NCBI GenBank assembly: GCA_002189035.1
Contig: NEEC01000361.1
Location: forward strand, 1 to 29,650
Direction of reading: 5' to 3'
Origin: Utricularia gibba
Taxonomy: Eukaryota; Plantae; Magnoliophyta
DNA length: 29,650 nucleotides
Positions 1 to 29,650 of the stretch are shown piece after piece; positions within the stretch are counted from its first letter, which is position 1; every line of letters starts with the position of its first letter. The position numbers and the translations under genes were made by a program. Under the pieces are notes generated by a model. It did no database searches. It saw nothing but the letters and a program-made list of their open reading frames with translations, and was not told where the DNA came from.

Positions 1-16
1 ACAACATACTTTATAC

Positions 17-330
17 ATGAGGAGGCGGTCTTGGGGGCACTTGGAACCGGAAAAAGATCAGCTTAGGCCTTGGCCCAAAGTAAGTTGTAGTCCGGCAAAT
101 AAAGTGATGTATTTATTATCGTTCGGTTTTCGGTGGCTGCCTACATGGTTTTTCAAGGAACCGCTTCTCGTTTTGTGGCGGCCAGTCTCGCTGGGAACTT
201 GGTCCTTGACGCCGATACTGTATTGCTCATGAGGTCAACCGGATGCAAATCAATTAAAAAAAATGATGCATTTTTTTAAATTACGATATCACGAGCACCC
301 TACATGATTTTTCAAACTCTTACTTTATAC
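17..330. repeat. Representative monomer made of two diverged ~155-159-bp subunits
   Basis: Ungapped at offset 159, positions 101-156 vs 260-315 match at 38/56. This includes CCTACATGGTTTTTCAA (140-156) vs CCTACATGATTTTTCAA (299-315), 16/17. At offset 156-158, TGAGGAGGC (18-26) vs TGTGGCGGC (174-182) match 7/9 and GGGCACTTGG (35-44) vs GGGAACTTGG (193-202) match 9/10. Confidence 0.85.
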
Positions 331-2849
331 TTCAGGAGGTGGTCTTTGGGGGGAAGAGGAACCGGACAAAAGTCAGCTTAGGCTTGGTCCGAAAGTAAGT
401 TGTAGCCCGGCAATGAAAGTGATGTATTTATTAACGTTCGGTATTCGCGGGCTGCCTACATGGTTTTTCAAGGAACCGCTTCTCGTTTTGTGACGGCCAG
501 TCTCGCTGGGAACTTGGTCCTTCATCCCCATTCTGTATGGCTCATGAGGTCAACTGGATGCAAATCGATTAAAAAAAATGATGCACTTGTTTAAATTATG
601 ATGTCACGTGCACCTCACATGATTTTTTCAACAACTTACTTTATACTTGAGAAGGCGGTCTTTGGGTGCACTTGGAAACGGAAAAAGATCAGCTTAGGCC
701 TTGGCCCAAAGTAAGTTGTAGCCCGGCAAAGAAAGTGATGTATTTATTAACGTTCGGTTTTCCGTGTTGCCTACAAGGTTTTTCAAGGAACAGCTTCTCG
801 TTTTGTGGCGGCCACTCTCGCTAGGAACTTGGTCCTTGACCCCAATTCTGTATGGCTCATGAGGTGAACTGGATGCAAATCGATTAAAAAAAATGATGCA
901 TTTGTTTAAATTACGATGTCACGTTCACTCCACATGATTTTTTTAACAACATACTTTATACATGAGGAGGCGGTCTTGGGGGCACTTGGAACCGGAAAAA
1001 GATCAGCTTAGGCCTTGGCCCAAAGTAAGTTGTAGTCCGGCAAATAAAGTGATGTATTTATTATCGTTCGGTTTTCGGGGGCTGCCTACATGGTTTTTCA
1101 AGGAACCGCTTCTCGTTTTGTGGCGGCCAGTCTCGCTGGGAACTTGGTCCTTGACCCGATTCTGTATGGCTCATGAGGTCAACTGGATGCAAATCGATTA
1201 AAAAAAAATGATGCATTTGTTTAAATTATGATGTCACGTGCACCCCACATGATTTTTTTCAACAACTTACTTTATACTTGAGGAGGCGGTCTTGGGGTGC
1301 AGCTGGAACGGGACAAAGGTAAGGTTTGGCTTGCCCGAGAGTTAGTTGTAGCCCGGCAAAAAAAAGTGATGTATTTATTAATGTTCGGTTTTCGGTGTTC
1401 CCTACATGGTTTTTCAAGGAACAGCTTCTCGTTTTGTGGCGGCCAGTCTCGCTAGGAACTTGGTCCGGGCCCGCGATTCTTTATGGCTCATGAGGACAAA
1501 GGATGCAAATCGATGAATACAATGTTGCATTTCTTTAAATTGCGATATCACGTGCACCCCACATGATTTTTTCAACAACTTACTTTATACTTGAGCAGGC
1601 GGTCTTTGGGTGCACCTGGAACGGGACAAAGGTAAGTTTGGCTTGCACCGAGAGTTAGTTGTAGTCTGGCAAATAAAGTGATGTATTTATTATCGTTCGG
1701 TTTTCGGGGCTGCCTACATGGTTTTCAAGGAACAGGTTCTCGTTTTGTGGCGGCCAGTCTCGCTGGGAACTTGGTCCTTGACCCCGATTCTGTATGGCTC
1801 AAGAGGTCAACTGGATGCAAATCGATTAAAAAAAATGATGCATTTGTTTAAATTATGATGTCACTTTCACCCCACATGATTTTTTTAACAACATACTTTA
1901 TACATGAGGAGGCGGTCTTGGGGGGCACTTGGAACCGGAAAAAGATCAGCTTAGGCCTTGACCCAAAGTAAGTTGTAGCCCAGCAAAGAAAGTGATGTAT
2001 TTATTAACGTTCGGTTTTAGGTGTTGCCTATATGGTTTTTCAAGGAACAGCTTCTCGTTTTGTGGCGGCCAGTCTCGCTGGGAACTTGGTCCTTGACCCC
2101 AATTCTGTATGGCTCATGAGGTCAACTGGATGCAAATCGATTAAAAAAAATGATGCATTTGTTTAAATTACGATGTCACGTGCACCCCACATGATTTTTT
2201 TCACAACATACTTTATACATGAGGAGGCGGTCTTGGGGGCACTTGGAACCGGAAAAAAGATCAGCTTAGGCCTTGGCCCAAAGTAAGTTGTAGTCCGGCA
2301 AATAAAGTGATGTATTTATTATCGTTCGGTTTTCGGTGGGCTGCCTACATGGTTTTTCAAGGAACCGCTTCTCGTTTTGTGGCGGCCAGTCTCGCTGGGA
2401 ACTTGGTCCTTGACGCCGATACTGTATTGCTCATGAGGTCAACCGGATGCAAATCAATTAAAAAAAATGATGCATTTTTTAAATTACGATATCACGAGCA
2501 CCCTACATGATTTTTTCAAACTCTTACTTTATACTTCAGGAGGTGGTCTTGGGGGGGAAGAGGAACCGGACAAAAGTCAGCTTAGGCTTGGTCCGAAAGT
2601 AAGTTGTAGCCCGGCAATGAAAGTGATGTATTTATTAACGTTCGGTATTCGCGGGCTGCCTACATGGTTTTTCAAGGAACCGCTTCTCGTTTTGTGACGG
2701 CCAGTCTCGCTGGGAACTTGGTCCTTCATCCCCATTCTGTATGGCTCATGAGGTCAACTGGATGCAAATCGATTAAAAAAAAGATGCACTTGTTTAAATT
2801 ATGATGTCACGTGCACCTCACATGATTTTTTTAACAACATACTTTATAC
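17..2849. repeat. Divergent satellite layer (monomers 1-9) with a 7-monomer ~2.2-kb periodicity
   Basis: Monomers 1-2 and 8-9 share private variants (GACGCCGATACTG, AAATCAATT, GGTATTCGCGGG, GTGACGGCC, CTTCATCCCC) at an offset of 2202-2204 bp. Monomers 3, 5 and 6 carry many private substitutions. Confidence 0.85.
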
Positions 2850-5346
2850 ATGAGGAGGCGGTCTTGGGGGCACTTGGAACCGGAAAAAGATCAGCTTAGG
2901 CCTTGGCCCAAAGTAAGTTGTAGTCCGGCAAATAAAGTGATGCATTTATTATCGTTCGGTTTTAGGTGTTGCCTACATGGTTTTTCAAGGAACGCTTCTC
3001 GTTTTGTGGCGGCCAGTCTCGCTGGGAACTTGGTCCTTGATCCGATTCTGTATGGCTCATGAGGTCAACTGGATGCAAATCGATTAAAAAAAATGATGCA
3101 TTTGTTTAAATTATGATGTCACGTGCACCTCACATGATTTTTTTAACAACATACTTTATACATGAGGAGGCGGTCTTGGGGGCACTTGGAACCGGAAAAA
3201 GATCAGCTTAGGCCTTGGCCCAAAGTAAGTTGTAGTCCGGCAAATAAAGTGATGCATTTATTATCGTTCGGTTTTAGGTGTTGCCTACATGGTTTTTCAA
3301 GGAACCGCTTCTCGTTTTGTGGCGGCCAGTCTCGCTGGGAACTTGGTCCTTGATCTCGATTCTGTATGGCTCATGAGGTCAACTGGATGCAAATCGATTA
3401 AAAAAAATGATGCACTTGTTTAAATTATGATGTCACGTGCACCTCACATGATTTTTTTAACAACATACTTTATACATGAGGAGGCGGTCTTGGGGGGCAC
3501 TTGGAACCGGAAAAAGATCAGCTTAGGCCTTGGCCCAAAGTAAGTTGTAGTCCGGCAAATAAAGTGATGCATTTATTATCGTTCGGTTTTAGGTGTTGCC
3601 TACATGGTTTTTCAAGGAACCGCTTCTCGTTTTGTGGCGGCCAGTCTCGCTGGGAACTTGGTCCTTGATCTCGATTCTGTATGGCTCATGAGGTCAACTG
3701 GATGCAAATCGATTAAAAAAAATGATGCATTTGTTTAAATTATGATGTCACGTGCACCCCACATGATTTTTTTAACAACATACTTTATACATGAGGAGGC
3801 GGTCTTGGGGGCACTTGGAACGGGAAAAAGGTCAGCTTAGGCCTTGGCCCAAAGTAAGTTGTAGTGCAAATAAAGTGATGTATTTATTACGTTCGGTTTT
3901 CGGGGCTGCCTACATGGTTTTTCAAGGAACTGCTTCTCGTTTTGTGGCGGCCAGTCTCGCTGGGAACTTGGTCCTTGACCCCAATTCTGTATGGCTCATG
4001 AGGTCAACTGGATGCAAATCGATTAAAAAAAATGATGCATTTGTTTAAATTATGATGTCACGTGCACCCCACATGATTTTTTTAACAACATACTTTATAC
4101 ATTAGGTGGCGGTCTTGGGGGCACTTTGAACCGGAAAAAGGTCAGCCTAGGCCTTGGCCCAAAGTAAGTTGTAGCCCGGCAAATAAAGTGATGTATTTAT
4201 TATCGTTCGGTTTTCGGGGCTGCCTACATGGTTTTTCAAGGAACTGCTTCTCGTTTTGTGGCGGCCAGTCTCGCTGGGAACTTGGTCCTTGATCCGATTC
4301 TGTATGGCTCATGAGGTCAACTGGATGCAAATCGATTAAAAAAAATGATGCATTTGTTTAAATTATGATGTCACGTGCACCCACATGATTTTTTTAACAA
4401 CATACTTTATACATGAGGAGGGTCTTGGGGGCACTTGGAACCGGAAAAAGATCAGCTTAGGCCTTGGCCCAAAGTAAGTTGTAGTCCGGCAAATAAAGTG
4501 ATGTATTTATTATCGTTCGGTTTTAGGTGTTGCCTACATGGTTTTTCAAGGAACCGCTTCTCGTTTTGTGGCGGCCAGTCTCGCTGGGAACTTGGTCCTT
4601 GATCCGATTCTGTATGGCTCATGAGGTCAACTGGATGCAAATCGATTAAAAAAATGATGCATTTGTTTAAATTATGATGTCACGTGCACCCACATGATTT
4701 TTTAACAACATACTTTATACATGAGAGGCGGTCTTGGGGGCACTTGGAACCGGAAAAAGATCAGCTTAGGCCTTGGCCCAAAGTAAGTTGTAGTCCGGCA
4801 AATAAAGTGATGTATTTATTATCGTTCGGTTTTAGGTGTTGCCTACATGGTTTTTCAAGGAACCGCTTCTCGTTTTGTGGCGGCCAGTCTCGCTGGGAAC
4901 TTGGTCCTTGATCCGATTCTGTATGGCTCATGAGGTCAACTGGATGCAAATCGATTAAAAAAAATGATGCATTTGTTTAAATTATGATGTCACGTGCACC
5001 CACATGATTTTTTAACAACATACTTTATACATGAGGAGGCGGTCTTGGGGGGCACTTGGAACCGGAAAAAAGATCAGCTTAGGCCTTGGCCCAAAGTAAG
5101 TTGTAGTCCGGCAAATAAAGTGATGTATTTATTATCGTTCGGTTTTAGGTGTTGCCTACATGGTTTTTCAAGGAACCGCTTCTCGTTTTGTGGCGGCCAG
5201 TCTCGCTGGGAACTTGGTCCTTGACCCCAATTCTGTATGGCTCATGAGGTCAACTGGATGCAAATCGATTTAAAAAAATGATGCATTTGTTTAAATTATG
5301 ATGTCACGTGCACCCCACATGATTTTTTTAACAACATACTTTATAC
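2850..5346. repeat. Locally homogenised monomer subfamily (monomers 10-17)
   Basis: B-type monomers with TTTTAGGTGTTG (10-12, 15-17), GTGATGCATTT (10-12) and CTTGATCCGA/CTTGATCTCGA (10-12, 14-16). These variants are nearly absent from the rest of the window. Confidence 0.8.
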
Positions 5347-5660
5347 ATGAGGAGGCGGTCTTGGGGGCACTTTGAACCGGAAAAAGGTCAGCTTAGGCCT
5401 TGGCCCAAAGTAAGTTGTAGCCCGGCAAATAAAGTGATGTATTTATTATCGTTCGGTTTTCGGGGGCTGCCTACATGGTTTTTCAAGGAACGCTTCTCGT
5501 TTTTTTGGCGGCCAGTCTCGCTGGGAACTTGGTCCTTGACCCCATTCTGTATGGCTCATGAGGTCAACTGGATGCAAATCGATTAAAAAAAATGATGCAT
5601 TTGTTTAAATTATGATGTCACGTGCACCCCACATGATTTTTTTAACAACATACTTTATAC

Positions 5661-6602
5661 ATGAGGAGGCGTCTTGGGGGCACTTGGAACCGGAAAAAGG
5701 TCAGCTTAGGCCTTGGCCCAAAGTAAGTTGTAGCCCAGCAAAGAAAGTGATGTATTTATTAACGTTCGGTTTTCGGTGTTGCCTACATGGTTTTTGAAGG
5801 AACAGCTTCTCATTTTGTGGCGGCCAGTCTCGCTGGGAACTTGGTCCTTGACCCCCATTCTGTATGGCTCATGAGGTCAACTGGATGTAAATCGATGAAT
5901 ACAATGTTGCATTTGTTTAAATTGCGATATCACGTGCACCTCACATGATTTTTTCAACAACTTACTTTATACCCTAGCAGAAGGTCTTTGGGTGCACGTG
6001 GAACGGGACAAAGTAAGGTTTGGCTTGCACCGAGAGTTAGTTGTAGTCTGGCAAATAAAGTGATGTATTTATTATCGTTCGGTTTTCGGGGGCTGCCTAC
6101 ATGGTTTTTCAAGGAACCGCTTCTCGTTTTGTGGCGGCCAGTCTCGCTGGGAACTTGGTCCTTGACCCCGATTCTGTATTGCTCATGAGGTCAACCGGAT
6201 GCAAATCGATTAAAAAAAATGATGCATTTTTTTAAATTACGATATCACGAGCACCCTACATGATTTTTTTCAAACTCTTACTTTATACTTCAGGAGGTGG
6301 TCTTGGGGGGGAAGAGGAACCGGAAAAAAGTCAGCTTAGGCTTGGCCGAAAGTAAGTTGTAGGCCGGCAATGAAAGTGATGTATTTATTAACGTTCGGTT
6401 TTCGGGGCTGCCTACATGGTTTTTCAAGGAACCGCTTCTCGTTTTGTGGCGGCCAGTCTTGCTGGGAACTTGGTCCTTGACCCCGATTCTGTATGGCCCA
6501 TGAGGTCAACTAGATGCAAATTGATTAAAAAAAATGATGCATTTGTTTAAATTATGATGTCACCTGCACCCCACATGATTTTTTTAACAACATACTTTAT
6601 AC
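5661..6602. repeat. Divergent trimer cassette (pre-C tail + C + D), copy 1
   Basis: Tail GATGTAAATCGATGAATACAATGTTGC is followed by C head CCCTAGCAGAAGGTCTTTGGGTGCACGTGGAACGGGACAAAG, then D head CTTCAGGAGGTGGTCTTGGGGGGAAGAGG. Confidence 0.9.
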
Positions 6603-7854
6603 ATGAGGAGGCGGTCTTGGGGGGCACTTGGAACCGGAAAAAGATCAGCTTAGGCCTTGGCCCAAAGTAAGTTGTAGCCCAACAAAGAAAGTGATGTATT
6701 TATTAACGTTCGGTTTTCGGTGTTGCCTACATGGTTTTTCAAGGAACAGCTTCTCGTTTTGTGGCGGCCAGTCTTGCTGGGAACTTGGTCCTTGACCCCG
6801 ATTCTGTATGGCCCATGAGGTCAACTGGATGCAAATTGATTAAAAAAAATGATGCATTTGTTTAAATTATGATGTCACGTGCACCCCACATGATTTTTTT
6901 AACAACATACTTTATACATGAGGAGGCGGTCTTGGGGGGCACTTGGAACCGGAAAAAGATCAGCTTAGGCCTTGGCCCAAAGTAAGTTGTAGCCCAGCAA
7001 AGAAAGTGATGTATTTATTAACGTTCGGTTTTCGGTGTTGCCTACATGGTTTTTCAAGGAACAGCTTCTCGTTTTTGGCGGCCAGTCTTGCTGGGAACTT
7101 GGTCCTTGACCCCGATTCTGTATGGCCCATGAGGTCAACTGGATGCAAATTGATTAAAAAAAATGATGCATTTGTTTAAATTATGATGTCACGTGCACCC
7201 CACATGATTTTTTTAACAACATACTTTATACATGAGGAGGCGGTCTTTGGGGCACTTGGAACCGGAAAAAGATCAGCTTAGGCCTTGGCCCAAAGTAAGT
7301 TGTAGCCCAGCAAAGAAAGATGTATTTATTAACGTTCGGTTTTCGGTGTTGCCTACATGGTTTTTCAAGGAACAGCTTCTCGTTTTGTGGCGGCCAGTCT
7401 CGCTGGGAACTTGGTCCTTGACCCCCATTCTGTATGGCTCATGAGGTCAACTGGATGCAAATCGATTAAAAAAAATGATGCACTTGTTTAAATTATGATG
7501 TCACGTGCACCCCACATGATTTTTTTAACAACATACTTTATACATGAGGAGGCGGTCTTGGGGCACTTGGAACCGGGAAAAAGATCAGCTTAGGCCTTGG
7601 CCCAAAGTAAGTTGTAGTCCGGCAAATAAAGTGATGTATTTATTCGTTCGGTTTTCGGGGCTGCCTACATGGTTTTTCAAGGAACCGCTTCTCGTTTTGT
7701 GGCGGCCAGTCTCGCTGGGAACTTGGTCCTTGACCCCCATTCTGTATGGCTCATGAGGTCAACTGGATGTAAATCGATGAATACAATGTTGCATTTGTTT
7801 AAATTGCGATATCACGTGCACCTCACATGATTTTTTCAACAACTTACTTTATAC
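5973..7854. repeat. Six-monomer higher-order unit (C-D-A'-A2-A1-B*), ~1.88 kb
   Basis: C starts at ~5973 and again at ~7855. The same six-type order recurs at 27152-29005. Confidence 0.7.
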
Positions 7855-8473
7855 CCTAGGTCTTTGGGTGCACGTGGAACCGGAAAAAGGTAAGCTTGGC
7901 TTGCACCGAGAGTTAGTTGTAGTCTGGCAAATAAAGTGATGTATTTATTATCGTTCGGTTTTCGGGGCTGCCTACATGGTTTTTCAAGGAACCGCTTCTC
8001 GTTTTGTGGCGGCCAGTCTCGCTGGGAACTTGGTCCTTGACCCCGATTCTGTATTGCTCATGAGGTCAACCGGATGCAAATCGATTAAAAAAAATGATGC
8101 ATTTTTTTAAATTACGATATCACGAGCACCCACATGATTTTTTCAAACTCTTACTTTATACTTCAGGAGGTGGTCTTGGGGGAAGAGGAACCGGAAAAAG
8201 TCAGCTTAGGCTTGGGCCGAAAGTAAGTTGTAGCCGGCAATGAAAGTGATGTATTTATTAACGTTCGGTTTTCGGGGGCTGCCTACATGGTTTTTCAAGG
8301 AACCGCTTCTCGTTTTGTGGCGGCCAGTCTTGCTGGGAACTTGGTCCTTGACCCCGATTCTGTATGGCCCATGAGGTCAACTGGATGCAAATTGATTAAA
8401 AAAAATGATGCATTTGTTTAAATTATGATGTCACGTGCACCCCACATGATTTTTTTTAACAACATACTTATAC
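7544..8473. repeat. B*-C-D cassette, copy 2
   Basis: Same pre-C tail, C markers (CTTGCACCGAGAGTTAG, GTATTGCTC, TCAACCGG, ATCACGAGC) and D markers (AAACTCTTAC, CAATGAAAG). Confidence 0.9.
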
Positions 8474-11400
8474 ATGAGGAGGCGGTCTTGGGGCACTTGG
8501 AACCGGAAAAAGATCAGCTTAGGCCTTGGCCCAAAGTAAGTTGTAGCCCAACAAAGAAAGTGATGTATTTATTAACGTTCGGTTTCGGTGTTGCCTACAT
8601 GGTTTTTCAAGGAACAGCTTCTCGTTTTGTGGCGGCCAGTCTCTTGCTGGGAACTTGGTCCTTGACCCCCGATTCTGTATGGCCCATGAGGTCAACTGGA
8701 TGCAAATTGATTAAAAAAAATGATGCATTTGTTTAAATTATGATGTCACGTGCACCCCACATGATTTTTTTAACAACATACTTTATACATGAGGAGGCGG
8801 TCTTGGGGGCACTTGGAACCGAAAAAGATCAGCTTAGGCCTTGGCCCAAAGTAAGTTGTAGCCCCAAAGCAAAGAAAGTGATGTATTTATTAACGTTCGG
8901 TTTTCGGTGTTGCCTACATGGTTTTTCAAGGAACAGCTTCTCTTTTGTGGCGGCCAGTCTCGCTGGGAACTTGGTCCTTGACCCCCATTCTGTATGGCTC
9001 ATGAGGTCAACTGGATGCAAATCGATTAAAAAAAATGATGCATTTGTTTAAATTATGATGTCACGTGCACCCCACATGATTTTTTCACAACATACTTTAT
9101 ACATGAGGAGCGGTCTTGGGGGGCACTTGGAACGGAAAAAAAATCAGCTTAGGCCTTGGCCCAAAGTAAGTTGTAGTACGGCAAATAAAGTGATGTATTT
9201 ATTACGTTCGGTTTTCGGGGGCTGCCTACATGGTTTTTCAAGGAACGCTTCTCGTTTTGTGGCGGCCAGTCTCGCTGGGAACTTGGTCCTTGACCCCGAT
9301 TCTGTATGGCTCATGAGGTCAACTGGATGCAAATCGATTAAAAAAAATGATGCATTTGTTTAAATTACGATGTCACGTGCACCCCACATGATTTTTTTAA
9401 CAACATACTTTATACATGAGGAGGCGGTCTTGGGGGGCACTTGGAACCGGAAAAAGATCAGCTTAGGCCTTGGCCCAAAGTAAGTTGTAGCCGCAAAGAA
9501 AGTGATGTATTTATTAACGTTCGGTTTTCGGTGTTGCCTACATGGTTTTTCAAGGAACAGCTTCTCGTTTTGTGGCGGCCAGTCTTGCTGGGAACTTGTC
9601 CTTGACCCCGATTCTGTATGGCCATGAGGTCAACTGGATGCAAATTGATTAAAAAAATGATGCATTTGTTTAAATTATGATGTCACGTGCACCCCACATG
9701 ATTTTTTTAACAACATACTTTATACATGAGGAGGCGGTCTTGGGGGCACTTGGAACCGGAAAAAGATCAGCTTAGGCCTTGGCCCAAAGTAAGTTGTAGC
9801 CCAGCAAAGAAAGTGATGTATTTATTAACGTTCGGTTTTCGGTGTTGCCTACATGGTTTTTCAAGGAACAGCTTCTCGTTTTGTGGCGGCCAGTCTCGCT
9901 GGGAACTTGGTCCTTGACCCCGATTCTGTATGGCCCATGAGGTCAACTGGATGCAAATTGATTAAAAAAAATGATGCATTTGTTTAAATTATGATGTCAC
10001 GTGCACCCCACATGATTTTTTAACAACATACTTTATACATGAAGAGGCGGTCGGGGGGGCACTTGGAACCGGAAAAAGATCAGCTTAGGCCTTGGCCAAA
10101 GTAAGTTGTAGCCCAGCAAAGAAAGTGATGTATTTATTAACGTTCGGTTTTCGGTGTTGCCTACATGGTTTTTCAAGGAACAGCTTCTCGTTTTGTGGCG
10201 GCCAGTCTCGCTGGGAACTTGGTCCTTGACCCCGATTCTGTATGGCTCATGAGGTCAACTGGATGCAAATCGATTTAAAAAAATGATGCATTTGTTTAAA
10301 TTATGATGTCACGTGCACCCCACATGATTTTTTTAACAACATACTTTATACATGAGGAGCGGTCTTGGGGGGCACTTGGAACGGAAAAAGATCAGCTTAG
10401 GCCTTGGCCCAAAGTAAGTTGTAGCCGGCAAATAAAGTGATGTATTTATTATCGTTCGGTTTTCGGGGCTGCCTACATGGTTTTTCAAGGAACGCTTCTC
10501 GTTTTGTGGCGGCCAGTCTCGCTGGGAACTTGGTCCTTGACCCCATTCTGTATGGCTCATGAGGTCAACTGGATGCAAATCGATTAAAAAAAATGATGCA
10601 TTTGTTTAAATTATGATGTCACGTGCACCCACATGATTTTTTAACAACATACTTTATACATGAGGAGGCGGTCTTGGGGGGCACTTGGAACCGGAAAAAG
10701 ATCAGCTTAGGCCTTGGCCCAAAGTAAGTTGTAGCCGGCAAAGAAAGTGATGTATTTATTAACGTTCGGTTTTCGGTGTTGCCTACATGGTTTTTCAAGG
10801 AACAGCTTCTCGTTTTGTGGCGGCCAGTCTCGCTGGGAACTTGGTCCTTGACCCCGATTCTGTATGGCTCATGAGGTCAACTGGATGCAAATCGATTAAA
10901 AAAAATGATGCATTTGTTTAAATTATGATGTCACGTGCACCCCACATGATTTTTTTAACAACATACTTTATACATGAGAGGCGGTCTTGGGGGCACTTGG
11001 AACCGGAAAAAGATCAGCTTAGGCCTTGGCCCAAAGTAAGTTGTAGCCCGGCAAAAGAAAGTGATGTATTTATTATCGTTCGGTTTTCGGGGGCTGCCTA
11101 CATGGTTTTTCAAGGAACGCTTCTCGTTTTGTGGCGGCCAGTCTCGCTGGGAACTTGGTCCTTGACCCCGATTCTGTATGGCTCATGAGGTCAACTGGAT
11201 GCAAATCGATTAAAAAAAATGATGCATTTGTTTAAATTATGATGTCACGTGCACCCCACATGATTTTTTTAACAACATACTTTATACATGAGGAGGCGGT
11301 CTTGGGGGGCACTTGGAACCGGAAAAAGATCAGCTTAGGCCTTGGCCCAAAGTAAGTTGTAGCCCAGCAAAGAAAGTGATGTATTTATTAACGTTCGGTT

Positions 11401-11912
11401 TTCGGTGTTGCCTACATGGTTTTTCAAGGAACAGCTTCTCGTTTTGTGGCGGCCAGTCTCGCTGGAACTTGGTCCTTGACCCGATTCTGTATGGCTCATG
11501 AGGTCAACTGGATGCAAATCGATTAAAAAAAATGATGCATTTGTTTAAATTATGATGTCACGTGCACCCCACATGATTTTTTTAACAACATACTTTATAC
11601 ATGAGGAGGCGGTCTTGGGGGGCACTTGGAACCGGAAAAAGATCAGCTTAGGCCTTGGCCCAAAGTAAGTTGTAGCCGGCAAAGAAAGTGATGTATTTAT
11701 TAACGTTCGGTTTTCGGTGTTGCCTACATGGTTTTTCAAGGAACGCTTCTCGTTTTGTGGCGGCCAGTCTCGCTGGGAACTTGGTCCTTGACCCCGATTC
11801 TGTATGGCTCATGAGGTCAACTGGATGCAAATCGATTAAAAAAAATGATGCATTTGTTTAAATTATGATGTCACGTGCACCCCACATGATTTTTTAACAA
11901 CATACTTTATAC

Positions 11913-12825
11913 ATGAGGAGGCGGTCTTGGGGGCACTTGGAACCGGAAAAAGATCAGCTTAGGCCTTGGCCCAAAGTAAGTTGTAGCCGGCAAATAAAGT
12001 GATGTATTTATTATCGTTCGGTTTTCGGGGCTGCCTACATGGTTTTTCAAGGAACCGCTTCTCGTTTTGTGGCGGCCAGTCTCGCTGGGAACTTGGTCCT
12101 TGACCCCGATTCTGTATGGCTCATGAGGTCAACTGGATGCAAATCGATTAAAAAATGATGCATTTGTTTAAATTGCGATGTCACGTGCACCCACATGATT
12201 TTTTAACAACTTACTTTATACATGAGGCGGTCTTTGGGGCACTTGGAACGGAAAAAGGTCAGCTTAGGCTTGCCAAAGTAAGTTGTAGTCGGCAAATAAA
12301 GTGATGTATTTATTATCGTTCGGTTTTCGGGGGCTGCCTACATGGTTTTTCAAGGAACCGCTTCTCGTTTTGTGGCGGCCAGTCTCGCTGGGAACTTGGT
12401 CCTTGACCCCGATTCTGTATGGCTCATGAGGTCAACTGGATGCAAATCGATTAAAAAAAATGATGCATTTTTTTAAATTATGATGTCACGTGCACCCACA
12501 TGATTTTTTCAAACATACTTTATACATGAGGAGGGTCTTGGGGGGGGAACCGGAAAAAGTCAGCTTAGGCTTGGCCAAAGTAAGTTGTAGCCCGGCAAAG
12601 AAAGTGATGTATTTATTAACGTTCGGTTTCGGGGCTGCCTACATGGTTTTTCAAGGAAGCTTCTCGTTTTGTGGCGGCCAGTCTCGCTGGGAACTTGGTC
12701 CTTGACCCCGATTCTGTATGGCTCATGAGGTCAACTGGATGCAAATGATTAAAAAAAATGATGCATTTGTTTAAATTATGATGTCACGTGCACCCACATG
12801 ATTTTTTTAACAACATACTTTATAC
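11913..12825. repeat. B-C-D cassette, blurred copy
   Basis: Short monomers (304 and 300 bp) keep partial C/D markers (AAATTGCG, AACAACTTAC, GCATTTTTTT, TTTTCAAAC, GGGGGGGAACCGG) mixed with consensus bases. Confidence 0.65.
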
Positions 12826-14700
12826 ATGAGGAGGCGGTCTTGGGGGGCACTTGGAACCGGAAAAGATCAGCTTAGGCCTTGGCCCAAAGTAAGTTGTAGC
12901 CCAGCAAAGAAAGTGATGTATTTATTAACGTTCGGTTTTCGGTGTTGCCTACATGGTTTTTCAAGGAACAGCTTCTCGTTTTGTGGCGGCCAGTCTCGCT
13001 GGGAACTTGGTCCTTGACCCCGATTCTGTATGGCTCATGAGGTCAACTGGATGCAAATCGATTAAAAAAAATGATGCATTTGTTTAAATTATGATGTCAC
13101 GTGCACCCCACATGATTTTTTTAACAACATACTTTATACATGAGGAGGCGGTCTTGGGGGCACTTGGAACGGAAAAAGTCAGCTTAGGCCTTGGCCCAAA
13201 GTAAGTTGTAGTCCGGCAAATAAAGTGATGTATTTATTATCGTTCGGTTTTCGGGGGCTGCCTACATGGTTTTTCAAGGAACGCTTCTCGTTTTGTGGCG
13301 GCCAGTCTCGCTGGGAACTTGGTCCTTGACCCGATTCTGTATGGCTCATGAGGTCAACTGGATGCAAATCGATTAAAAAAAATGATGCATTTGTTTAAAT
13401 TATGATGTCACGTGCACCCCCACATGATTTTTTTAACAACATACTTTATACATGAGGAGGCGGTCTTGGGGGCACTTGGAACCGGAAAAAGATCAGCTTA
13501 GGCCTTGGCCAAAGTAAGTTGTAGCCGGCAAAGAAAGTGATGTATTTATTAACGTTCGGTTTTCGGTGTTGCCTACATGGTTTTTCAAGGAACGCTTCTC
13601 GTTTTGTGGCGGCCAGTCTCGCTGGGAACTTGGTCCTTGACCCCGATTCTGTATGGCTCATGAGGTCAACTGGATGCAAATCGATTAAAAAAAATGATGC
13701 ATTTGTTTAAATTATGATGTCACGTGCACCCACATGATTTTTTTAACAACATACTTTATACATGAGGAGGCGGTCTTGGGGGCACTTGGAACCGGAAAAA
13801 GATCAGCTTAGGCCTTGGCCCAAAGTAAGTTGTAGTCCCAGCAAAGAAAGTGATGTATTTATTACGTTCGGTTTTCGGTGTTGCCTACATGGTTTTTCAA
13901 GGAACGCTTCTCGTTTTGTGGCGGCCAGTCTCGCTGGGAACTTGGTCCTTGACCCCGATTCTGTATGGCTCATGAGGTCAACTGGATGCAAATCGATTAA
14001 AAAAAATGATGCATTTGTTTAAATTATGATGTCACGTGCACCCCACATGATTTTTTTAACAACATACTTTATACATGAGGAGGCGGTCTTGGGGGCACTT
14101 GGAACCGGAAAAAGATCAGCTTAGGCCTTGGCCCAAAGTAAGTTGTAGCCCGGCAAAGAAAGTGATGTATTTATTAACGTTCGGTTTTCGGTGTTGCCTA
14201 CATGGTTTTTCAAGGAACGCTTCTCGTTTTGTGGCGGCCAGTCTTGCTGGGAACTTGGTCCTTGACCCCGATTCTGTATGGCCCATGAGGTCAACTGGAT
14301 GCAAATTGATTAAAAAAAATGATGCATTTGTTTAAATTATGATGTCACGTGCACCCCACATGATTTTTTTAACAACATACTTTATACATGAGGAGGCGGT
14401 CTTTGGGGGCACTTGGAACGGAAAAAGATCAGCTTAGGCCTTGGCCCAAAGTAAGTTGTAGCCCAGCAAAGAAAGTGATGTATTTATTAACGTTCGGTTT
14501 TCGGTGTTGCCTACATGGTTTTTCAAGGAACAGCTTCTCGTTTTGTGGCGGCCAGTCTCGCTGGGAACTTGGTCCTTGACCCCATTCTGTATGGCTCATG
14601 AGGTCAACTGGATGCAAATCGATTAAAAAAAATGATGCATTTGTTTAAATTATGATGTCACGTGCACCCCACATGATTTTTTTAACAACATACTTTATAC

Positions 14701-15612
14701 ATGAGGAGGCGGTCTTGGGGGCACTTGGAACCGGAAAAAGATCAGCTTAGGCCTTGGCCCAAAGTAAGTTGTAGTCCGGCAAATAAAGTGATGTATTTAT
14801 TATCGTTCGGTTTTCGGGGGCTGCCTACATGGTTTTTCAAGGAACCGCTTCTCGTTTTGTGGCGGCCAGTCTCGCTGGAACTTGGTCCTTGACCCCATTC
14901 TGTATGGCTCATGAGGTCAACTGGATGCAAATCGAAAAAATGATGCATTTGTTTAAATTGCGATGTCACGTGCACCCACATGATTTTTTAACAACATACT
15001 TTATACATAGGTCTTTGGGGCACTTGGAACGGAAAAGGTCAGCTTAGGCTTGCCCAAAGTTAGTTGTAGTCCGGCAAATAAAGTGATGTATTTATTATCG
15101 TTCGGTTTTCGGGGCTGCCTACATGGTTTTTCAAGGAACCGCTTCTCGTTTTTGGCGGCCAGTCTCGCTGGGAACTTGGTCCTTGACCCCGATTCTGTAT
15201 GGCTCATGAGGTCAACTGGATGCAAATCGATTAAAAAAAATGATGCATTTTTTTAAATTACGATGTCACGTGCACCCACATGATTTTTTCAAACATACTT
15301 TATACCAGGAGGCGGTCTTGGGGGGGGAGGAACCGGAAAAAGTCAGCTTAGGCCTTGGGCCAAAGTAAGTTGTAGCCCGGCAATAAAGTGATGTATTTAT
15401 TAACGTTCGGTTTTCGGGGCTGCCTACATGGTTTTTCAAGGAACCGCTTCTCGTTTTGTGGCGGCCAGTCTCGCTGGGAACTTGGTCCTTGACCCCGATT
15501 CTGTATGGCCCATGAGGTCAACTGGATGCAAATCGATTAAAAAAAATGATGCATTTGTTTAAATTATGATGTCACGTGCACCCACATGATTTTTTAACAA
15601 CATACTTTATAC
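14701..15612. repeat. B-C-D cassette, blurred copy
   Basis: Monomers of about 299 and 307 bp with partial markers (AAATTGCG, GGCTTGCCC, GTTAGTTG, TTTTCAAAC, GGGGGGAGGAACC). Confidence 0.65.
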
Positions 15613-17802
15613 ATGAGGAGGCGGTCTTGGGGGGCACTTGGAACCGGAAAAAGATCAGCTTAGGCCTTGGCCCAAAGTAAGTTGTAGCCCAAAAGAAAGT
15701 GATGTATTTATTAACGTTCGGTTTTCGGTTTGCCTACATGGTTTTTCAAGGAACAGCTTCTCGTTTTGTGGCGGCCAGTCTGCTGGGAACTTGGTCCTTG
15801 ACCCCGATTCTGTATGGCCCATGAGGTCAACTGGATGCAAATTGATTAAAAAAAATGATGCATTTGTTTAAATTATGATGTCACGTGCACCCACATGATT
15901 TTTTTTAACAACATACTTTATACATGAGGAGGCGGTCTTGGGGGGCACTTGGAACCGGAAAAAGATCAGCTTAGGCCTTGGCCCAAAGTAAGTTGTAGCC
16001 CAGCAAAGAAAGTGATGTATTTATTAACGTTCGGTTTTCGGTGTTGCCTACATGGTTTTTCAAGGAACAGCTTCTCGTTTTGTGGCGGCCAGTCTCGCTG
16101 GGAACTTGGTCCTTGACCCCCATTCTGTATGGCTCATGAGGTCAACTGGATGCAAATCGATTAAAAAAAATGATGCATTTGTTTAAATTATGATGTCACG
16201 TGCACCCCACATGATTTTTTCACAACATACTTTATACATGAGGAGGCGGTCTTGGGGGCACTTGGAACCGGAAAAAGGTCAGCTTAGGCCTTGGCCCAAA
16301 GTAAGTTGTAGTGGCAAATAAAGTGATGTATTTATTATCGTTCGGTTTTCGGGGGCTGCCTACATGGTTTTTCAAGGAACGCTTCTCGTTTTGTGGCGGC
16401 CAGTCTCGCTGGGAACTTGGTCCTTGACCCCGATTCTGTATGGCTCATGAGGTCAACTGGATGCAAATCGATTAAAAAAAATGATGCATTTGTTTAAATT
16501 ATGATGTCACGTGCACCCCACATGATTTTTTTAACAACATACTTTATACATGAGGAGGCGGTCTTGGGGGGCACTTGGAACCGGAAAAAGATCAGCTTAG
16601 GCCTTGGCCCAAAGTAAGTTGTAGCCCAGCAAAGAAAGTGATGTATTTATTAACGTTCGGTTTTCGGTGTTGCCTACATGGTTTTTCAAGGAACAGCTTC
16701 TCGTTTTGTGGCGGCCAGTCTGCTGGGAACTTGGTCCTTGACCCCGATTCTGTATGGCCATGAGGTCAACTGGATGCAAATGATTAAAAAAATGATGCAT
16801 TTGTTTAAATTATGATGTCACGTGCACCCACATGATTTTTTTTAACAACATACTTTATACATGAGGAGGCGGTCTTGGGGGGCACTTGGAACGGAAAAAA
16901 ATCAGCTTAGGCCTTGGCCCAAAGTAAGTTGTAGCCCGGCAAAAAGTGATGTATTTATTACGTTCGGTTTTCGGGGGCTGCCTACATGGTTTTTCAAGGA
17001 ACAGCTTCTCGTTTTGTGGCGGCCAGTCTCGCTGGGAACTTGGTCCTTGACCCCGATTCTGTATGGCTCATGAGGTCAACTGGATGCAAATCGATTAAAA
17101 AAAATGATGCATTTGTTTAAATTACGATGTCACGTGCACCCACATGATTTTTTTAACAACATACTTTATACATGAGGAGGCGGTCTTGGGGGCACTTGGA
17201 ACCGGAAAAAGATCAGCTTAGGCCTTGGCCCAAAGTAAGTTGTAGCCCAGCAAAGAAAGTGATGTATTTATTAACGTTCGGTTTTCGGTGTTGCCTACAT
17301 GGTTTTTCAAGGAACAGCTTCTCGTTTTGTGGCGGCCAGTCTTGCTGGGAACTTGGTCCTTGACCCCGATTCTGTATGGCCCATGAGGTCAACTGGATGC
17401 AAATTGATTAAAAAAAATGATGCATTTGTTTAAATTATGATGTCACGTGCACCCCACATGATTTTTTTAACAACATACTTTATACATGAGGAGGCGGTCT
17501 TGGGGGGCACTTGGAACCGGAAAAAGATCAGCTTAGGCCTTGGCCCAAAGTAAGTTGTGTAGCCCAGCAAAGAAAGTGATGTATTTATTAACGTTCGGTT
17601 TTCGGTGTTGCCTACATGGTTTTTCAAGGAACAGCTTCTCATTTTGTGGCGGCCAGTCTCGCTGGGAACTTGGTCCTTGACCCCATTCTGTATGGCTCAT
17701 GAGGTCAACTGGATGCAAATCGATTAAAAAAAATGATGCACTTGTTTAAATTATGATGTCACGTGCACCCCACATGATTTTTTTTAACAACATACTTTAT
17801 AC

Positions 17803-18730
17803 ATGAGGAGGCGGTCTTGGGGGCACTTGGAACCGGAAAAAGATCAGCTTAGGCCTTGGCCCAAAGTAAGTTGTAGTCCGGCAAATAAAGTGATGTATTT
17901 ATTGTCGTTCGGTTTTCGGGGCTGCCTACATGGTTTTTCAAGGAACCGCTTCTCGTTTTGTGGCGGCCAGTCTCGCTGGGAACTTGGTCCTTGACCCCCA
18001 TTCTGTATGGCTCATGAGGTCAACTGGATGTAAATCGATGAATAAATGTTGCATTTGTTTAAATTGCGATATCACGTGCACCTCACATGATTTTTTCAAC
18101 AACTTACTTTATAAGCGGTCTTTGGGGCACGTGGAACGGACAAAGTAAGTTTGGCTTGCCCGAGAGTTAGTTGTAGTCTGGCAAATAAAGTGATGTATTT
18201 ATTATCGTTCGGTTTTCGGGGGCTGCCTACATGGTTTTTCAAGGAACCGCTTCTCGTTTTGTGGCGGCCAGTCTCGCTGGGAACTTGGTCCTTGACCCCG
18301 ATTCTGTATGGCTCATGAGGTCAACCGGATGCAAATCGATTAAAAAAAATGATGCATTTTTTTAAATTACGATATCACGAGCACCCCACATGATTTTTTC
18401 AAACTCTTACTTTATACTTCAGGAGGTGGTCTTGGGGGGAAGAGGAACCGGACAAAAGTCAGCTTAGGCTTGGGCCAAAGTAAGTTGTAGGCCGGCAATG
18501 AAAGTGATGTATTTATTAACGTTCGGTTTTCGGGGGCTGCCTACATGGTTTTTCAAGGAACCGCTTCTCGTTTTGTGGCGGCCAGTCTTGCTGGGAACTT
18601 GGTCCTTGACCCCGATTCTGTATGGCCCATGAGGTCAACTAGATGCAAATTGATTAAAAAAATGATGCATTTGTTTAAATTATGATGTCACGTGCACCCC
18701 ACATGATTTTTTTAACAACATACTTTATAC
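17803..18730. repeat. B*-C-D cassette
   Basis: B* with TTATTGTCG and the GATGTAAATCGATGAAT tail, C head CACGTGGAACGGACAAAG...CCGAGAGTTAG, D head CTTCAGGAGGTGG. Confidence 0.9.
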
Positions 18731-21700
18731 ATGAGGAGGCGGTCTTGGGGGGCACTTGGAACCGGAAAAAGATCAGCTTAGGCCTTGGCCCAAAGTAAGT
18801 TGTAGCCACAAAGAAAGTGATGTATTTATTAACGTTCGGTTTTCGGTGTTGCCTACATGGTTTTTCAAGGAACAGCTTCTCGTTTTGTGGCGGCCAGTCT
18901 TGCTGGGAACTTGGTCCTTGACCCCGATTCTGTATGGCCCATGAGGTCAACTGGATGCAAATTGATTAAAAAAAATGATGCATTTGTTTAAATTATGATG
19001 TCACGTGCACCCCACATGATTTTTTTAACAACATACTTTTATACATGAGGAGGCGGTCTTGGGGGGCACTTGGAACCGGAAAAAGATCAGCTTAGGCCTT
19101 GGCCCAAAGTAAGTTGTAGCCCAGCAAAGAAGTGATGTATTTATTAACGTTCGGTTTTCGGTGTTGCCTACATGGTTTTTCAAGGAACAGCTTCTCGTTT
19201 TGTGGCGGCCAGTCTTGCTGGGAACTTGGTCCTTGACCCCGATTCTGTATGGCCCATGAGGTCAACTGGATGCAAATTGATTAAAAAAAATGATGCATTT
19301 GTTTAAATTATGATGTCACGTGCACCCCACATGATTTTTTTAACAACATACTTTATACATGAGGAGGCGGTCTTGGGGGCACTTGGAACCGGAAAAAGAT
19401 CAGCTTAGGCCTTGGCCCAAAGTAAGTTGTAGCCCAGCAAAGAAAGTGATGTATTTATTAACGTTCGGTTTTCGGTGTTGCCTACATGGTTTTTCAAGGA
19501 ACAGCTTCTCGTTTTGTGGCGGCCAGTCTTGCTGGGAACTTGGTCCTTGACCCCGATTCTGTATGGCCCATGAGGTCAACTGGATGCAAATTGATTAAAA
19601 AAAATGATGCATTTGTTTAAATTATGATGTCACGTGCACCCCACATGATTTTTTTAACAACATACTTTATACATGAGGAGGCGGTCTTGGGGGGCACTTG
19701 GAACCGGAAAAAGATCAGCTTAGGCCTTGGCCCAAAGTAAGTTGTAGCCAACAAAGAAAGTGATGTATTTATTAACGTTCGGTTTTCGGTGTTGCCTACA
19801 TGGTTTTTCAAGGAAACGCTTCTCGTTTTGTGGCGGCCAGTCTCGCTGGGAACTTGGTCCTTGACCCCGATTCTGTATGGCCCATGAGGTCAACTGGATG
19901 CAAATTGATTAAAAAAAATGATGCATTTGTTTAAATTATGATGTCACGTGCACCCCACATGATTTTTTTAACAACATACTTTATACATGAGGAGGCGGTC
20001 TTGGGGGCACTTGGAACCGGAAAAAGATCAGCTTAGGCCTTGGCCCAAAGTAAGTTGTAGTCCGGCAAAAAAGTGATGTATTTATTATCGTTCGGTTTTA
20101 GGTTGCCTACATGGTTTTTCAAGGAACCGCTTCTCGTTTTGTGGCGGCCAGTCTCGCTGGGAACTTGGTCCTTGACCCGATTCTGTATGGCTCATGAGGT
20201 CAACTGGATGCAAATCGATTAAAAAAAATGATGCATTTGTTTAAATTATGATGTCACGTGCACCCCACATGATTTTTTTAACAACATACTTTATACATGA
20301 GGAGGCGGTCTTGGGGGCACTTGGAACCGGAAAAAGATCAGCTTAGGCCTTGGCCCAAAGTAAGTTGTAGCCCAGCAAAGAAAGTGATGTATTTATTAAC
20401 GTTCGGTTTTCGGGGCTGCCTACATGGTTTTTCAAGGAACCGCTTCTCGTTTTGTGGCGGCCAGTCTCGCTGGGAACTTGGTCCTTGACCCCGATTCTGT
20501 ATGGCTCATGAGGTCAACTGGATGCAAATCGATTAAAAAAAATGATGCATTTGTTTAAATTATGATGTCACGTGCACCCACATGATTTTTTTTAACAACA
20601 TACTTTATACATGAGGAGGCGGTCTTGGGGGCACTTGGAACCGGAAAAAAGATCAGCTTAGGCCTTGGCCCAAAGTAAGTTGTAGCCCAAAGAAAGTGAT
20701 GTATTTTTATTACGTTCGGTTTTCGGTGTTGCCTACATGGTTTTTCAAGGAACAGCTTCTCGTTTTGTGGCGGCCAGTCTCGCTGGGAACTTGGTCCTTG
20801 ACCCCGATTCTGTATGGCTCATGAGGTCAACTGGATGCAAATTGATTAAAAAAAATGATGCATTTGTTTAAATTATGATGTCACGTGCACCCACATGATT
20901 TTTTTAACAACATACTTTATACATGAGGAGGCGGTCTTGGGGGCACTTGGAACCGGAAAAAGATCAGCTTAGGCCTTGGCCCAAAGTAAGTTGTAGCCCA
21001 GCAAAGAAAGTGATGTATTTATTAACGTTCGGTTTTCGGTTTGCCTACATGGTTTTTCAAGGAACAGCTTCTCGTTTTGTGGCGGCCAGTCTCGCTGGGA
21101 ACTTGGTCCTTGACCCCATTCTGTATGGCTCATGAGGTCAACTGGATGCAAATCGATTAAAAAAATGATGCATTGTTTAAATTATGATGTCACGTGCACC
21201 CACATGATTTTTTTCACAACATACTTTATACATGAGGAGGCGTCTTGGGGGGCACTTGGAACGGAAAAAGGTCAGCTTAGGCCTTGGCCCAAAGTAAGTT
21301 GTAGTACGGCAAATAAAGTGATGTATTTATTATCGTTCGGTTTTCGGGGGCTGCCTACATGGTTTTTCAAGGAACTGCTTCTCGTTTTGTGGCGGCCAGT
21401 CTCGCTGGGAACTTGGTCCTTGACCAATTCTGTATGGCTCATGAGGTCAACTGGATGCAAATCGATTAAAAAAAATGATGCATTTGTTTAAATTACGATG
21501 TCACGTTCACCCACATGATTTTTTAACAACATACTTTATACATGAGGAGGCGGTCTTGGGGGCACTTGGAACCGGAAAAAGATCAGCTTAGGCCTTGGCC
21601 CAAAGTAAGTTGTAGCCCGGCAAAGAAAGTGATGTATTTATTAACGTTCGGTTTTCGGTGTTGCCTACATGGTTTTTCAAGGAACAGCTTCTCGTTTTGT

Positions 21701-24700
21701 GGCGGCCAGTCTCGCTGGGAACTTGGTCCTTGACCCCATTCTGTATGGCTCATGAGGTCAACTGGATGCAAATCGATTAAAAAAATGATGCATTTGTTTA
21801 AATTATGATGTCACGTGCACCCACATGATTTTTTTAACAACATACTTTATACATGAGGAGGGGTCTTGGGGGCACTTGGAACCGGAAAAAGGTCAGCTTA
21901 GGCCTTGGCCCAAAGTAAGTTGTAGTCGGGCAAAGAAAGTGATGTATTTATTATCGTTCGGTTTTCGGGGTGCCTACATGGTTTTTCAAGGAACAGCTTC
22001 TCGTTTTGTGGCGGCCAGTCTCGCTGGGAACTTGGTCCTTGACCCCGATTCTGTATGGCTCATGAGGTCAACTGGATGCAAATCGATTAAAAAAAATGAT
22101 GCATTTGTTTAAATTACGATGTCACGTCACCCACATGATTTTTTTAACAACATACTTTATACATGAGGAGGCGGTCTTGGGGGGCACTTGGAACCGGAAA
22201 AAGATCAGCTTAGGCCTTGGCCCAAAGTAAGTTGTAGCCAGCAAAGAAAGTGATGTATTTATTAACGTTCGGTTTTCGGTGTTGCCTACATGGTTTTTCA
22301 AGGAACAGCTTCTCGTTTTGTGGCGGCCAGTCTCGCTGGGAACTTGGTCCTTGACCCGATTCTGTATGGCCCATGAGGTCAACTGGATGCAAATCGATTA
22401 AAAAAAATGATGCATTTGTTTAAATTATGATGTCACGTGCACCCCATGATTTTTTTCACAACATACTTTATACATGAGGAGGCGGTCTTGGGGGGCACTT
22501 GGAACGGAAAAAGATCAGCTTAGGCCTTGGCCCAAAGTAAGTTGTAGTACGGCAAATAAAGTGATGTATTTATTATCGTTCGGTTTTCGGTGTTGCCTAC
22601 ATGGTTTTTCAAGGAACAGCTTCTCGTTTTGTGGCGGCCAGTCTCGCTGGGAACTTGGTCCTTGACCCCGATTCTGTATGGCTCATGAGGTCAACTGGAT
22701 GCAAATCGATTAAAAAAATGATGCATTTGTTTAAATTATGATGTCACGTGCACCCCACATGATTTTTTTAACAACATACTTTATACATGAGGAGGCGGTC
22801 TTGGGGGGCACTTGGAACCGGAAAAAGATCAGCTTAGGCCTTGGCCCAAAGTAAGTTGTAGCCCAGCAAAGAAAGTGATGTATTTATTAACGTTCGGTTT
22901 TCGGTGTTGCCTACATGGTTTTTCAAGGAACAGCTTCTCGTTTTGTGGCGGCCAGTCTTGCTGGGAACTTGGTCCTTGACCCCGATTCTGTATGGCCCAT
23001 GAGGTCAACTGGATGCAAATTGATTAAAAAAAATGATGCATTTGTTTAAATTATGATGTCACGTGCACCCCACATGATTTTTTTAACAACATACTTTATA
23101 CATGAGGAGGCGGTCTTGGGGGGCACTTGGAACCGGAAAAAGATCAGCTTAGGCCTTGGCCCAAAGTAAGTTGTAGCCCAGCAAAGAAAGTGATGTATTT
23201 ATTAACGTTCGGTTTTCGGTGTTGCCTACATGGTTTTTCAAGGAACAGCTTCTCGTTTTGTGGCGGCCAGTCTCGCTGGGAACTTGGTCCTTGACCCCAT
23301 TCTGTATGGCTCATGAGGTCAACTGGATGCAAATCGATTAAAAAAATGATGCATTGTTTAAATTATGATGTCACGTGCACCCCACATGATTTTTTTAACA
23401 ACATACTTTATACATGAGGAGCGGTCTTGGGGGGCACTTGGAACCGGAAAAAGATCAGCTTAGGCCTTGGCCCAAAGTAAGTTGTAGTCCGGCAAATAAA
23501 GTGATGTATTTATTATCGTTCGGTTTTCGGGGGCTGCCTACATGGTTTTTCAAGGAACTGCTTCTCGTTTTGTGGCGGCCAGTCTCGCTGGGAACTTGGT
23601 CCTTGACCCCGATTCTGTATGGCTCATGAGGTCAACTGGATGCAAATCGATTAAAAAAAATGATGCATTTGTTTAAATTATGATGTCACGTGCACCCCAC
23701 ATGATTTTTTTAACAACATACTTTACATGAGGAGGCGGTCTTGGGGGGCACTTGGAACCGGAAAAAGATCAGCTTAGGCCTTGGCCCAAAGTAAGTTGTA
23801 GCCCGGCAAAGAAAGTGATGTATTTATTAACGTTCGGTTTTCGGTGTTGCCTACATGGTTTTTCAAGGAACAGCTTCTCGTTTTGTGGCGGCCAGTCTCG
23901 CTGGGAACTTGGTCCTTGACCCCCATTCTGTATGGCTCATGAGGTCAACTGGATGCAAATCGATTAAAAAATGATGCATTGTTTAAATTATGATGTCACG
24001 TGCACCCCACATGATTTTTTTCACAACATACTTTATACATGAGGAGGCGGTCTTGGGGGGCACTTGGAACGGAAAAAGATCAGCTTAGGCCTTGGCCCAA
24101 AGTAAGTTGTAGTCGGCAAATAAAGTGATGTATTTATTATCGTTCGGTTTTCGGGGGCTGCCTACATGGTTTTTCAAGGAACTGCTTCTCGTTTTGTGGC
24201 GGCCAGTCTCGCTGGGAACTTGGTCCTTGACCCAATTCTGTATGGCTCATGAGGTCAACTGGATGCAAATCGATTAAAAAAAATGATGCATTTGTTTAAA
24301 TTACGATGTCACGTGCACCCCACATGATTTTTTAACAACATACTTTATACATGAGGAGGCGGTCTTGGGGGCACTTGGAACCGGAAAAAGATCAGCTTAG
24401 GCCTTGGCCCAAAGTAAGTTGTAGCCCAAAGAAAGTGATGTATTTATTAACGTTCGGTTTTCGGTGTTGCCTACATGGTTTTTCAAGGAACAGCTTCTCG
24501 TTTTGTGGCGGCCAGTCTCTGGGAACTTGGTCCTTGACCCGATTCTGTATGGCTCATGAGGTCAACTGGATGCAAATCGATTAAAAAAAATGATGCATTT
24601 GTTTAAATTATGATGTCACGTGCACCCCACATGATTTTTTTAACAACATACTTTATACATGAGGAGGCGGTCTTGGGGGGCACTTGGAACCGGAAAAAGA

Positions 24701-26843: not shown

Positions 26844-27762
26844 ATGAGGAGGCGGTCTTGGGGGCACTTGGAACCGGAAAAAGATCAGCTTAGGCCTTGG
26901 CCCAAAGTAAGTTGTAGTCCGGCAAATAAAGTGATGTATTTATTCGTTCGGTTTTCGGGGGCTGCCTACATGGTTTTTCAAGGAACGCTTCTCGTTTTGT
27001 GGCGGCCAGTCTCGCTGGGAACTTGGTCCTTGACCCCATTCTGTATGGCTCATGAGGTCAACTGGATGCAAATCGATTAAAAAAATGATGCATTTGTTTA
27101 AATTATGATGTCACGTGCACCACATGATTTTTTTAACAACATACTTTATATAGAGAAGGTCTTTGGGGCACTGGAACGGAAAAGGTAAGCTTTGGCTTGC
27201 CCAAGTAAGTTGTAGTCCAAATAAAGTGATGTATTATTATCGTTCGGTTTTCGGGGGCTGCCTACATGGTTTTTCAAGGAACCGCTTCTCGTTTTGTGGC
27301 GGCCAGTCTCGCTGGGAACTTGGTCCTTGACCCCGATTCTGTATTGCTCATGAGGTCAACCGGATGCAAATCGATTAAAAAAAATGATGCATTTTTTTAA
27401 ATTACGATATCACGAGCACCCTACATGATTTTTTTAAACTCTTACTTTATACTTCAGGAGGTGGTCTTGGGGGGAAGAGGAACCGGACAAAAGTCAGCTT
27501 AGGCTTGGCCGAAAGTAAGTTGTAGGCCGGCAATGAAAGTGATGTATTTATTAACGTTCGGTTTTCGGGGGCTGCCTACATGGTTTTTCAAGGAACCGCT
27601 TCTCGTTTTGTGGCGGCCAGTCTTGCTGGGAACTTGGTCCTTGACCCGATTCTGTATGGCCATGAGGTCAACTGATGCAAATTGATTAAAAAAAATGATG
27701 CATTTGTTTAAATTATGATGTCACGTGCACCCCACATGATTTTTTTACAACATACTTTATAC
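26844..27762. repeat. B-C-D cassette with blurred C head
   Basis: C monomer of about 301 bp (GGTAAGCTTTGGCTTGC, GTATTGCTC, ATCACGAGC) followed by a clear D (CTTCAGGAGGTGG, CAATGAAAG). Confidence 0.8.
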
Positions 27763-29005: not shown

Positions 29006-29630
29006 CCTAGCAGAAGGTCTTGGGGCACTGGAACGGGAAAAGGTAAGGTTTGGCTTGCACCGAGAGTTAGTTGTAGTCTGGCAAATAAAGTGATGTATTT
29101 ATTATCGTTCGGTTTTCGGGGGCTGCCTACATGGTTTTTCAAGGAACCGCTTCTCGTTTTGTGGCGGCCAGTCTCGCTGGACTTGGTCCTTGACCCCGAT
29201 TCTGTATTGCTCATGAGGTCAACCGGATGCAAATCGATTAAAAAAAATGATGCATTTTTTTTAAATTACGATATCACGAGCACCCTACATGATTTTTTTC
29301 AAACTCTTACTTTATACTTCAGGAGGTGGTCTTGGGGGGGAAGAGGAACCGGACAAAAGTCAGCTTAGGCTTGGGCCGAAAGTAAGTTGTAGGCCGGCAA
29401 TGAAAGTGATGTATTTATTAACGTTCGGTTTTCGGGGCTGCCTACATGGTTTTTCAAGGAACCGCTTCTCGTTTTGTGGCGGCCAGTCTTGCTGGGAACT
29501 TGGTCCTTGACCCGATTCTGTATGGCCATGAGGTCAACTGGATGCAAATCGATTAAAAAAAATGATGCATTTGTTTAAATTATGATGTCACCTGCACCCC
29601 ACATGATTTTTTTAACAACATACTTTATAC
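28694..29630. repeat. B*-C-D cassette, last copy
   Basis: B* with TTATTGTCG and the GATGTAAAATCG...CAATGTTGC tail, C head CCCTAGCAGAAGG, D head CTTCAGGAGGTGG and tail GTCACCTGCACC. Confidence 0.9.
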
Positions 29631-29650
29631 ATGAGGAGGCGGTCTTGGGG

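Follow-up and report, generated by a model that had tools for sequence, protein, structure and literature searches.

Is the 313-bp unit of this satellite elementary, or is it composed of two older pieces of about 157 bp each, and which of the two lengths is the one that is now kept uniform? The question is raised by a window of 29,650 bases from Utricularia gibba (the window being the whole stretch of DNA that was analyzed), which is filled by a single array in which a 313-base unit recurs head to tail about 95 times, always in the same orientation. A first-pass annotation had read this array as a nested hierarchy of 157 bp, 313 bp and ~1.9 kb.

The array and its consensus unit

Tandem Repeats Finder (TRF) reported a period of 313, 95.1 copies and 93% matches over positions 1–29650, and a blastn search of the window with monomer 1 (17–329) gave 95 matches, all of them on the plus strand. 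The window holds no sequence other than the 313-bp satellite, and neither flanking nor source DNA lies within it. In the 4 kb that were scanned against Rfam, no match was obtained at E values up to 1, a hammerhead or other RNA family being absent, and a tRNA scan found none. As a long head-to-tail, non-coding array of one unit, the locus is tandem satellite DNA.

The array was cut into monomers, and the 93 full-length monomers were aligned to give a 314-nt majority consensus, in which the consensus base has a mean frequency of 0.957. Coordinates of the unit, its halves and the segments that they share are collected in Table 1. Among all differences from the column majority, approximately 29% are indel cells (394, versus 963 substitutions). 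The indels that were inspected are homopolymer length changes (CCCC/CCC, GGGGG/GGGG and T runs), and some of the apparent variation among monomers may therefore be long-read sequencing error. Two monomers are short, with lengths of 300 bp (12526–12825) and 299 bp (14701–14999), and ~13 bp are deleted in each.

Table 1. Positions in the window of the satellite array, the first monomer, its halves and the arms shared between them.
Feature	Position	Strand	Basis
313-bp satellite array, ~95 copies	1..29650	+	TRF, blastn
Monomer 1; sets the phase of the consensus	17..329	+	
Half A of monomer 1 (consensus 1–157); GC-rich, then AT-rich	17..173	+	Half-versus-half alignment
Half B of monomer 1 (consensus 158–314)	174..329	+	Half-versus-half alignment
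Strong arm, A copy (AAAGTGATGTATTT ... CCTACATGGTTTTTCAA)	101..156	+	38/56 ungapped versus 260–315
Strong arm, B copy (AAAATGATGCATTT ... CCTACATGATTTTTCAA)	260..315	+	38/56 ungapped versus 101–156
Weak arm, A copy (TGAGGAGGC ... GGGCACTTGG)	18..44	+	Offsets 156 and 158 to the B copy
Weak arm, B copy (TGTGGCGGC ... GGGAACTTGG)	174..202	+	Offsets 156 and 158 to the A copy

Similarity between the two halves of the unit

The first-pass annotation had aligned 101–156 with 260–315 at 38 of 56 ungapped positions, a count that we reproduced exactly, and the motif offsets that it gave for the other arm were recovered as well, with TGAGGAGGC at 18 and TGTGGCGGC at 174 being separated by 156, and GGGCACTTGG at 35 and GGGAACTTGG at 193 by 158. 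It had further named two signs by which a dimer should be recognized, an autocorrelation peak near the half unit and a half-versus-half score above that of shuffled sequence, and both were found. In the raw window, the median autocorrelation was 0.2545, whereas the peak at lags 156 and 157 reached 0.332 and 0.326. When the 314-nt consensus was compared with itself circularly, the best lag besides lag 1 was 157, which is exactly half of the unit length (n/2).

Because the 95 copies are not independent, the significance tests were run on the consensus. The best local alignment of opposite halves scored 22, whereas dinucleotide-preserving shuffles scored 9.5 ± 1.4, and none of 2000 shuffles reached 22 (z 8.8); the score was taken as the maximum over 12 rotations, so that the offset was not presupposed. 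Aligned globally, the two 157-nt halves scored 3, compared with −38.7 ± 6.1 for shuffled halves, a value reached by 0 of 3000 (z 6.8). The identity of A to B was 61% overall (92/150, gaps allowed), 68% in the strong arm and 51–58% elsewhere, and the 55–70% estimated in the first-pass annotation is thus a fair description. Percent identity alone is uninformative, since shuffled halves attain ~52% identity in gapped alignment. These data indicate that the halves are significantly similar at the half-unit offset (lag 157 of 314), as expected of a composite monomer.

The similarity lies in two blocks. In the AT-rich strong arm, consensus 81–145 aligns with 239–304 at 44 of 65 positions (68%), with one gap and an offset of 158–159. 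Since both strong arms are AT-rich, each was shuffled separately with its own dinucleotide content kept, and the observed score was reached by none of 20,000 such shuffles. The other block is GC-rich and comprises ~44 bases, consensus 1–44 aligning with 158–203 at 25 of 43 positions (58%, p 0.003, with boundaries chosen post hoc); the GC-rich arm taken whole was marginal, with p 0.011 under +1/−1 scoring and 0.02–0.16 under three other schemes. No similarity above shuffles was detected for the 36 nt between the blocks (consensus 45–80 versus 204–238) or for the last 12 nt (consensus 146–157 versus 305–314). Along the half, therefore, a 65-nt and a ~44-nt block are in register, so that ~109 of the 157 positions belong to blocks with detectable in-register similarity and ~48 do not, and the stretch between the two blocks has decayed beyond recognition. 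Of the features of a composite monomer that were examined, collinearity along the whole half is thus the one that can be detected only in part.

The distance between the two motifs common to both halves is 32 nt in A and 33 nt in B. A degenerate pattern built from both motifs matches 165 of the ~190 half-units in the window. Transitions make up 0.42 of the A/B mismatches versus 0.34 in the shuffle null, a shift in the direction of homology that is not significant (p 0.07). Columns in which A and B agree were no less variable than the others (p 0.66). The AT-rich dinucleotide content of the consensus has a period-157 component (p 0.005). A still older subunit of ~52 bp (157/3) was rejected: the corresponding peak of AT-rich dinucleotides had a corrected p of 0.074, and neither lag 52 nor lag 105 gave any sequence similarity.

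The unit of homogenization

When half-units were typed by their AT-rich arm, they followed the order ABAB over 190 half-units, with 0 AA or BB adjacencies. The modal spacing was 157, spacings otherwise ranged from 140 to 163 besides those in the two short monomers, and no half-unit register shift occurred anywhere. Like halves are ~93% identical across monomers, whereas A and B are ~60% identical. No polymorphism shared between the halves was found at sites that differ between A and B, minor alleles matching the base of the other half no more often than shifted controls did. No exchange between A and B halves is apparent. Given the strict alternation and the lack of shared polymorphism, it is the 313-base dimer, and not the 157-base piece, that is now kept uniform, which bears out what the first-pass annotation had claimed for the unit of homogenization; the unit behaves as a composite monomer whose half-types alternate strictly and are homogenized separately. 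The Jukes-Cantor distance between A and B is about 0.5–0.55, compared with ~0.07 among monomers, which suggests that the duplication is much older than the present array.

At one place, TGATGCATTT, which carries the B-type base, replaces TGATGTATTT in three consecutive A halves (2938, 3250 and 3565). Only one shared site is involved, and a recurrent T/C change might account for it.

No regular higher-order repeat of 1.9 kb

The third level of the hierarchy, which the first-pass annotation had put at ~1.9 kb, did not hold up as a regular higher-order repeat. Monomers six apart had a mean identity of 0.9328, versus 0.9236 in permuted order (z 4.7), and the p value of 0.004 applies to the maximum over 30 lags; at lags other than 6, identity was 0.924–0.929. 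The signal at lag 6 is thus a real but faint local periodicity. In a regular repeat of 6 monomers (~1.9 kb), monomers one period apart should stand out, but here they are barely more alike, with a gain of less than 1 percentage point. A single type accounts for 58 of the 93 monomers, and the variants are scattered.

The clearest higher-order feature of the window lies at its start, where monomers 1–2 (17–645) are 98–99% identical to monomers 8–9 (2219–2848), a local copy with a seven-monomer lag.

An invariant block and an inverted repeat

The longest run that is invariant among the 93 monomers is the 22-nt block CCTACATGGTTTTTCAAGGAAC (consensus 123–144; window 139–160, with the same place in every monomer), and the 20-nt window of lowest variability has a permutation p of 0.015. 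No other part of the unit has been kept as well between the A and B halves. Its counterpart in the B half is more variable, chiefly in the lengths of C and T runs. By analogy with the CENP-B box, CCTACATGGTTTTTCAAGGAAC might be a putative protein-binding box selected in both subunits since the duplication, a proposal that we regard as quite improbable. If it were correct, the way in which A and B have decayed relative to each other would be owed to constraint as well as to age.

Half B also contains an AT-rich inverted repeat at 252–282 (AATTAAAAAAAATG / CATTTTTTTAAATT), with 14-nt arms that are 93% complementary and a 3-nt loop. The consensus version is less perfect, and half A has only a weak counterpart.

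Origin of the 313-bp unit

The two collinear blocks at offset n/2 and the strict ABAB order sustain the diverged dimer of the first-pass annotation, and, judged from its sequence, the 313-bp unit is very probably a fossil heterodimer of two diverged ~157-bp pieces. A sequence of ~157 bp would have been duplicated in tandem, and its copies, A and B, would have diverged to ~60% identity. The A+B pair would then have been amplified as a single 313-bp unit and would have been kept uniform by unequal exchange or conversion in the 313-bp register. This order of events, in which duplication precedes divergence and divergence precedes amplification, is one that we infer.

The same similarity could have come about by a partial internal duplication, in which a ~65-bp AT-rich segment was copied within a unit of ~250 bp, the rest of the halves being unrelated and the GC-rich match being due to chance. 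The strong arm does hold most of the signal, consensus 45–80 lacks similarity, the p values of the whole GC-rich arm extend from 0.011 to 0.16, and the next-best local alignments, with offsets of 135 and 197, do not fall on the diagonal. We nevertheless consider a partial duplication unlikely and favor the dimer, because the copy offset of 158–159 in a 314-nt unit is close to n/2, where a random insertion would fall in ~3% of cases by our own estimate, because the GC-rich block at consensus 1–44 is itself matched in register, because A and B have the same length (157 nt each), and because the motif spacing is 32 in one half and 33 in the other. Composition or convergence is another explanation: both halves pass from GC-rich to AT-rich, and short motifs might be shared by chance or through the binding of a common protein. 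The period-157 component of the AT-rich dinucleotide signal would fit such a reading, as would the fact that the best-kept common block is also where the array varies least. However, the strong arm exceeds all of the shuffles in which the dinucleotide content of each arm was kept, and its 44 of 65 matches with one gap go far beyond two short motifs and are not confined to them, which makes this explanation barely credible.

A further possibility concerns what came before the dimer. The A+B pair may have been ready-made, either from the subrepeats of another element, such as an rDNA spacer or an LTR retrotransposon, or through a single duplication of unique DNA, with amplification coming only afterwards. 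This course would agree with the failure to find, in the one metagenome collection searched, any free 157-bp array related to A or B, and satellites derived from rDNA spacer subrepeats have been documented in plants (Silene X43.1, PMC3212565; tomato, PMC2679016). There is no direct evidence against it, but it would alter only the pre-history of the unit and leave its dimer structure unaffected; we hold it to be possible, though rather doubtful.

Relatives and comparable satellites

A scan of a metagenome collection with the degenerate two-motif pattern yielded only two matches, both by chance in unrelated, non-repeat DNA. A literature search with twelve 18–19-mers of the consensus, on both strands, found none of them in the papers covered, and no matching published family was found. 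The dimer reading is based on a single consensus sequence, because neither a free 157-bp relative nor a related satellite from another genome was found.

All satellite consensuses of the wheat satellitome have internal direct subrepeats, which were read as long units grown from short ones, and TaeSat15-620 consists of 4 × 155 bp (PMC10827815). The present unit is like TaeSat15-620 in that a piece of ~155–157 bp, repeated directly, makes up the long unit; it differs in having only two copies, much more diverged at ~60% identity, and a part that can no longer be aligned, the comparison being one of structure.

Dimeric higher-order units are well known in primate alpha satellite. Such units are also usual among the satellites of beetles (PMC5615363). 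The present unit shares with these dimers the strict alternation of two monomer types and the homogenization of the pair as one. In beetle and alpha-satellite dimers, however, the two types are usually 70–85% identical and monomeric arrays persist, whereas the halves described here are near the limit of detection and are not known in monomeric form.

Unit lengths close to those of the dimer and its half occur in two other plants. The subtelomeric satellites of Silene latifolia include X43.1, with a 313-bp consensus, and 15Ssp, of 159 bp (PMC3212565), the likeness being in the lengths of 313 bp and about 159 bp. Identity with X43.1 was rejected, as a 26-nt part of probe 12H5, the only part searched, had no counterpart in the window when as many as 3 mismatches were tolerated. 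In Patellifolia procumbens, pTS4.1 is pericentromeric and pTS5 centromeric, and the likeness is again one of unit lengths, which are 312 bp and 158 bp, respectively. Identity with pTS4.1 was rejected as well: one 24-mer from its published consensus likewise had no counterpart at a tolerance of up to 3 mismatches, and that consensus appeared unrelated by eye.

Implications

The growth of satellites by fixation of a diverged dimer is common and a matter of textbooks; the present finding is correct but ordinary, and its significance beyond annotation is small. Probes for the A and B half-units can be used to seek older monomeric relatives. For analyses of chromatin and phasing, the true period of this satellite may be the half-unit length of about 157 bp rather than the full 313 bp.
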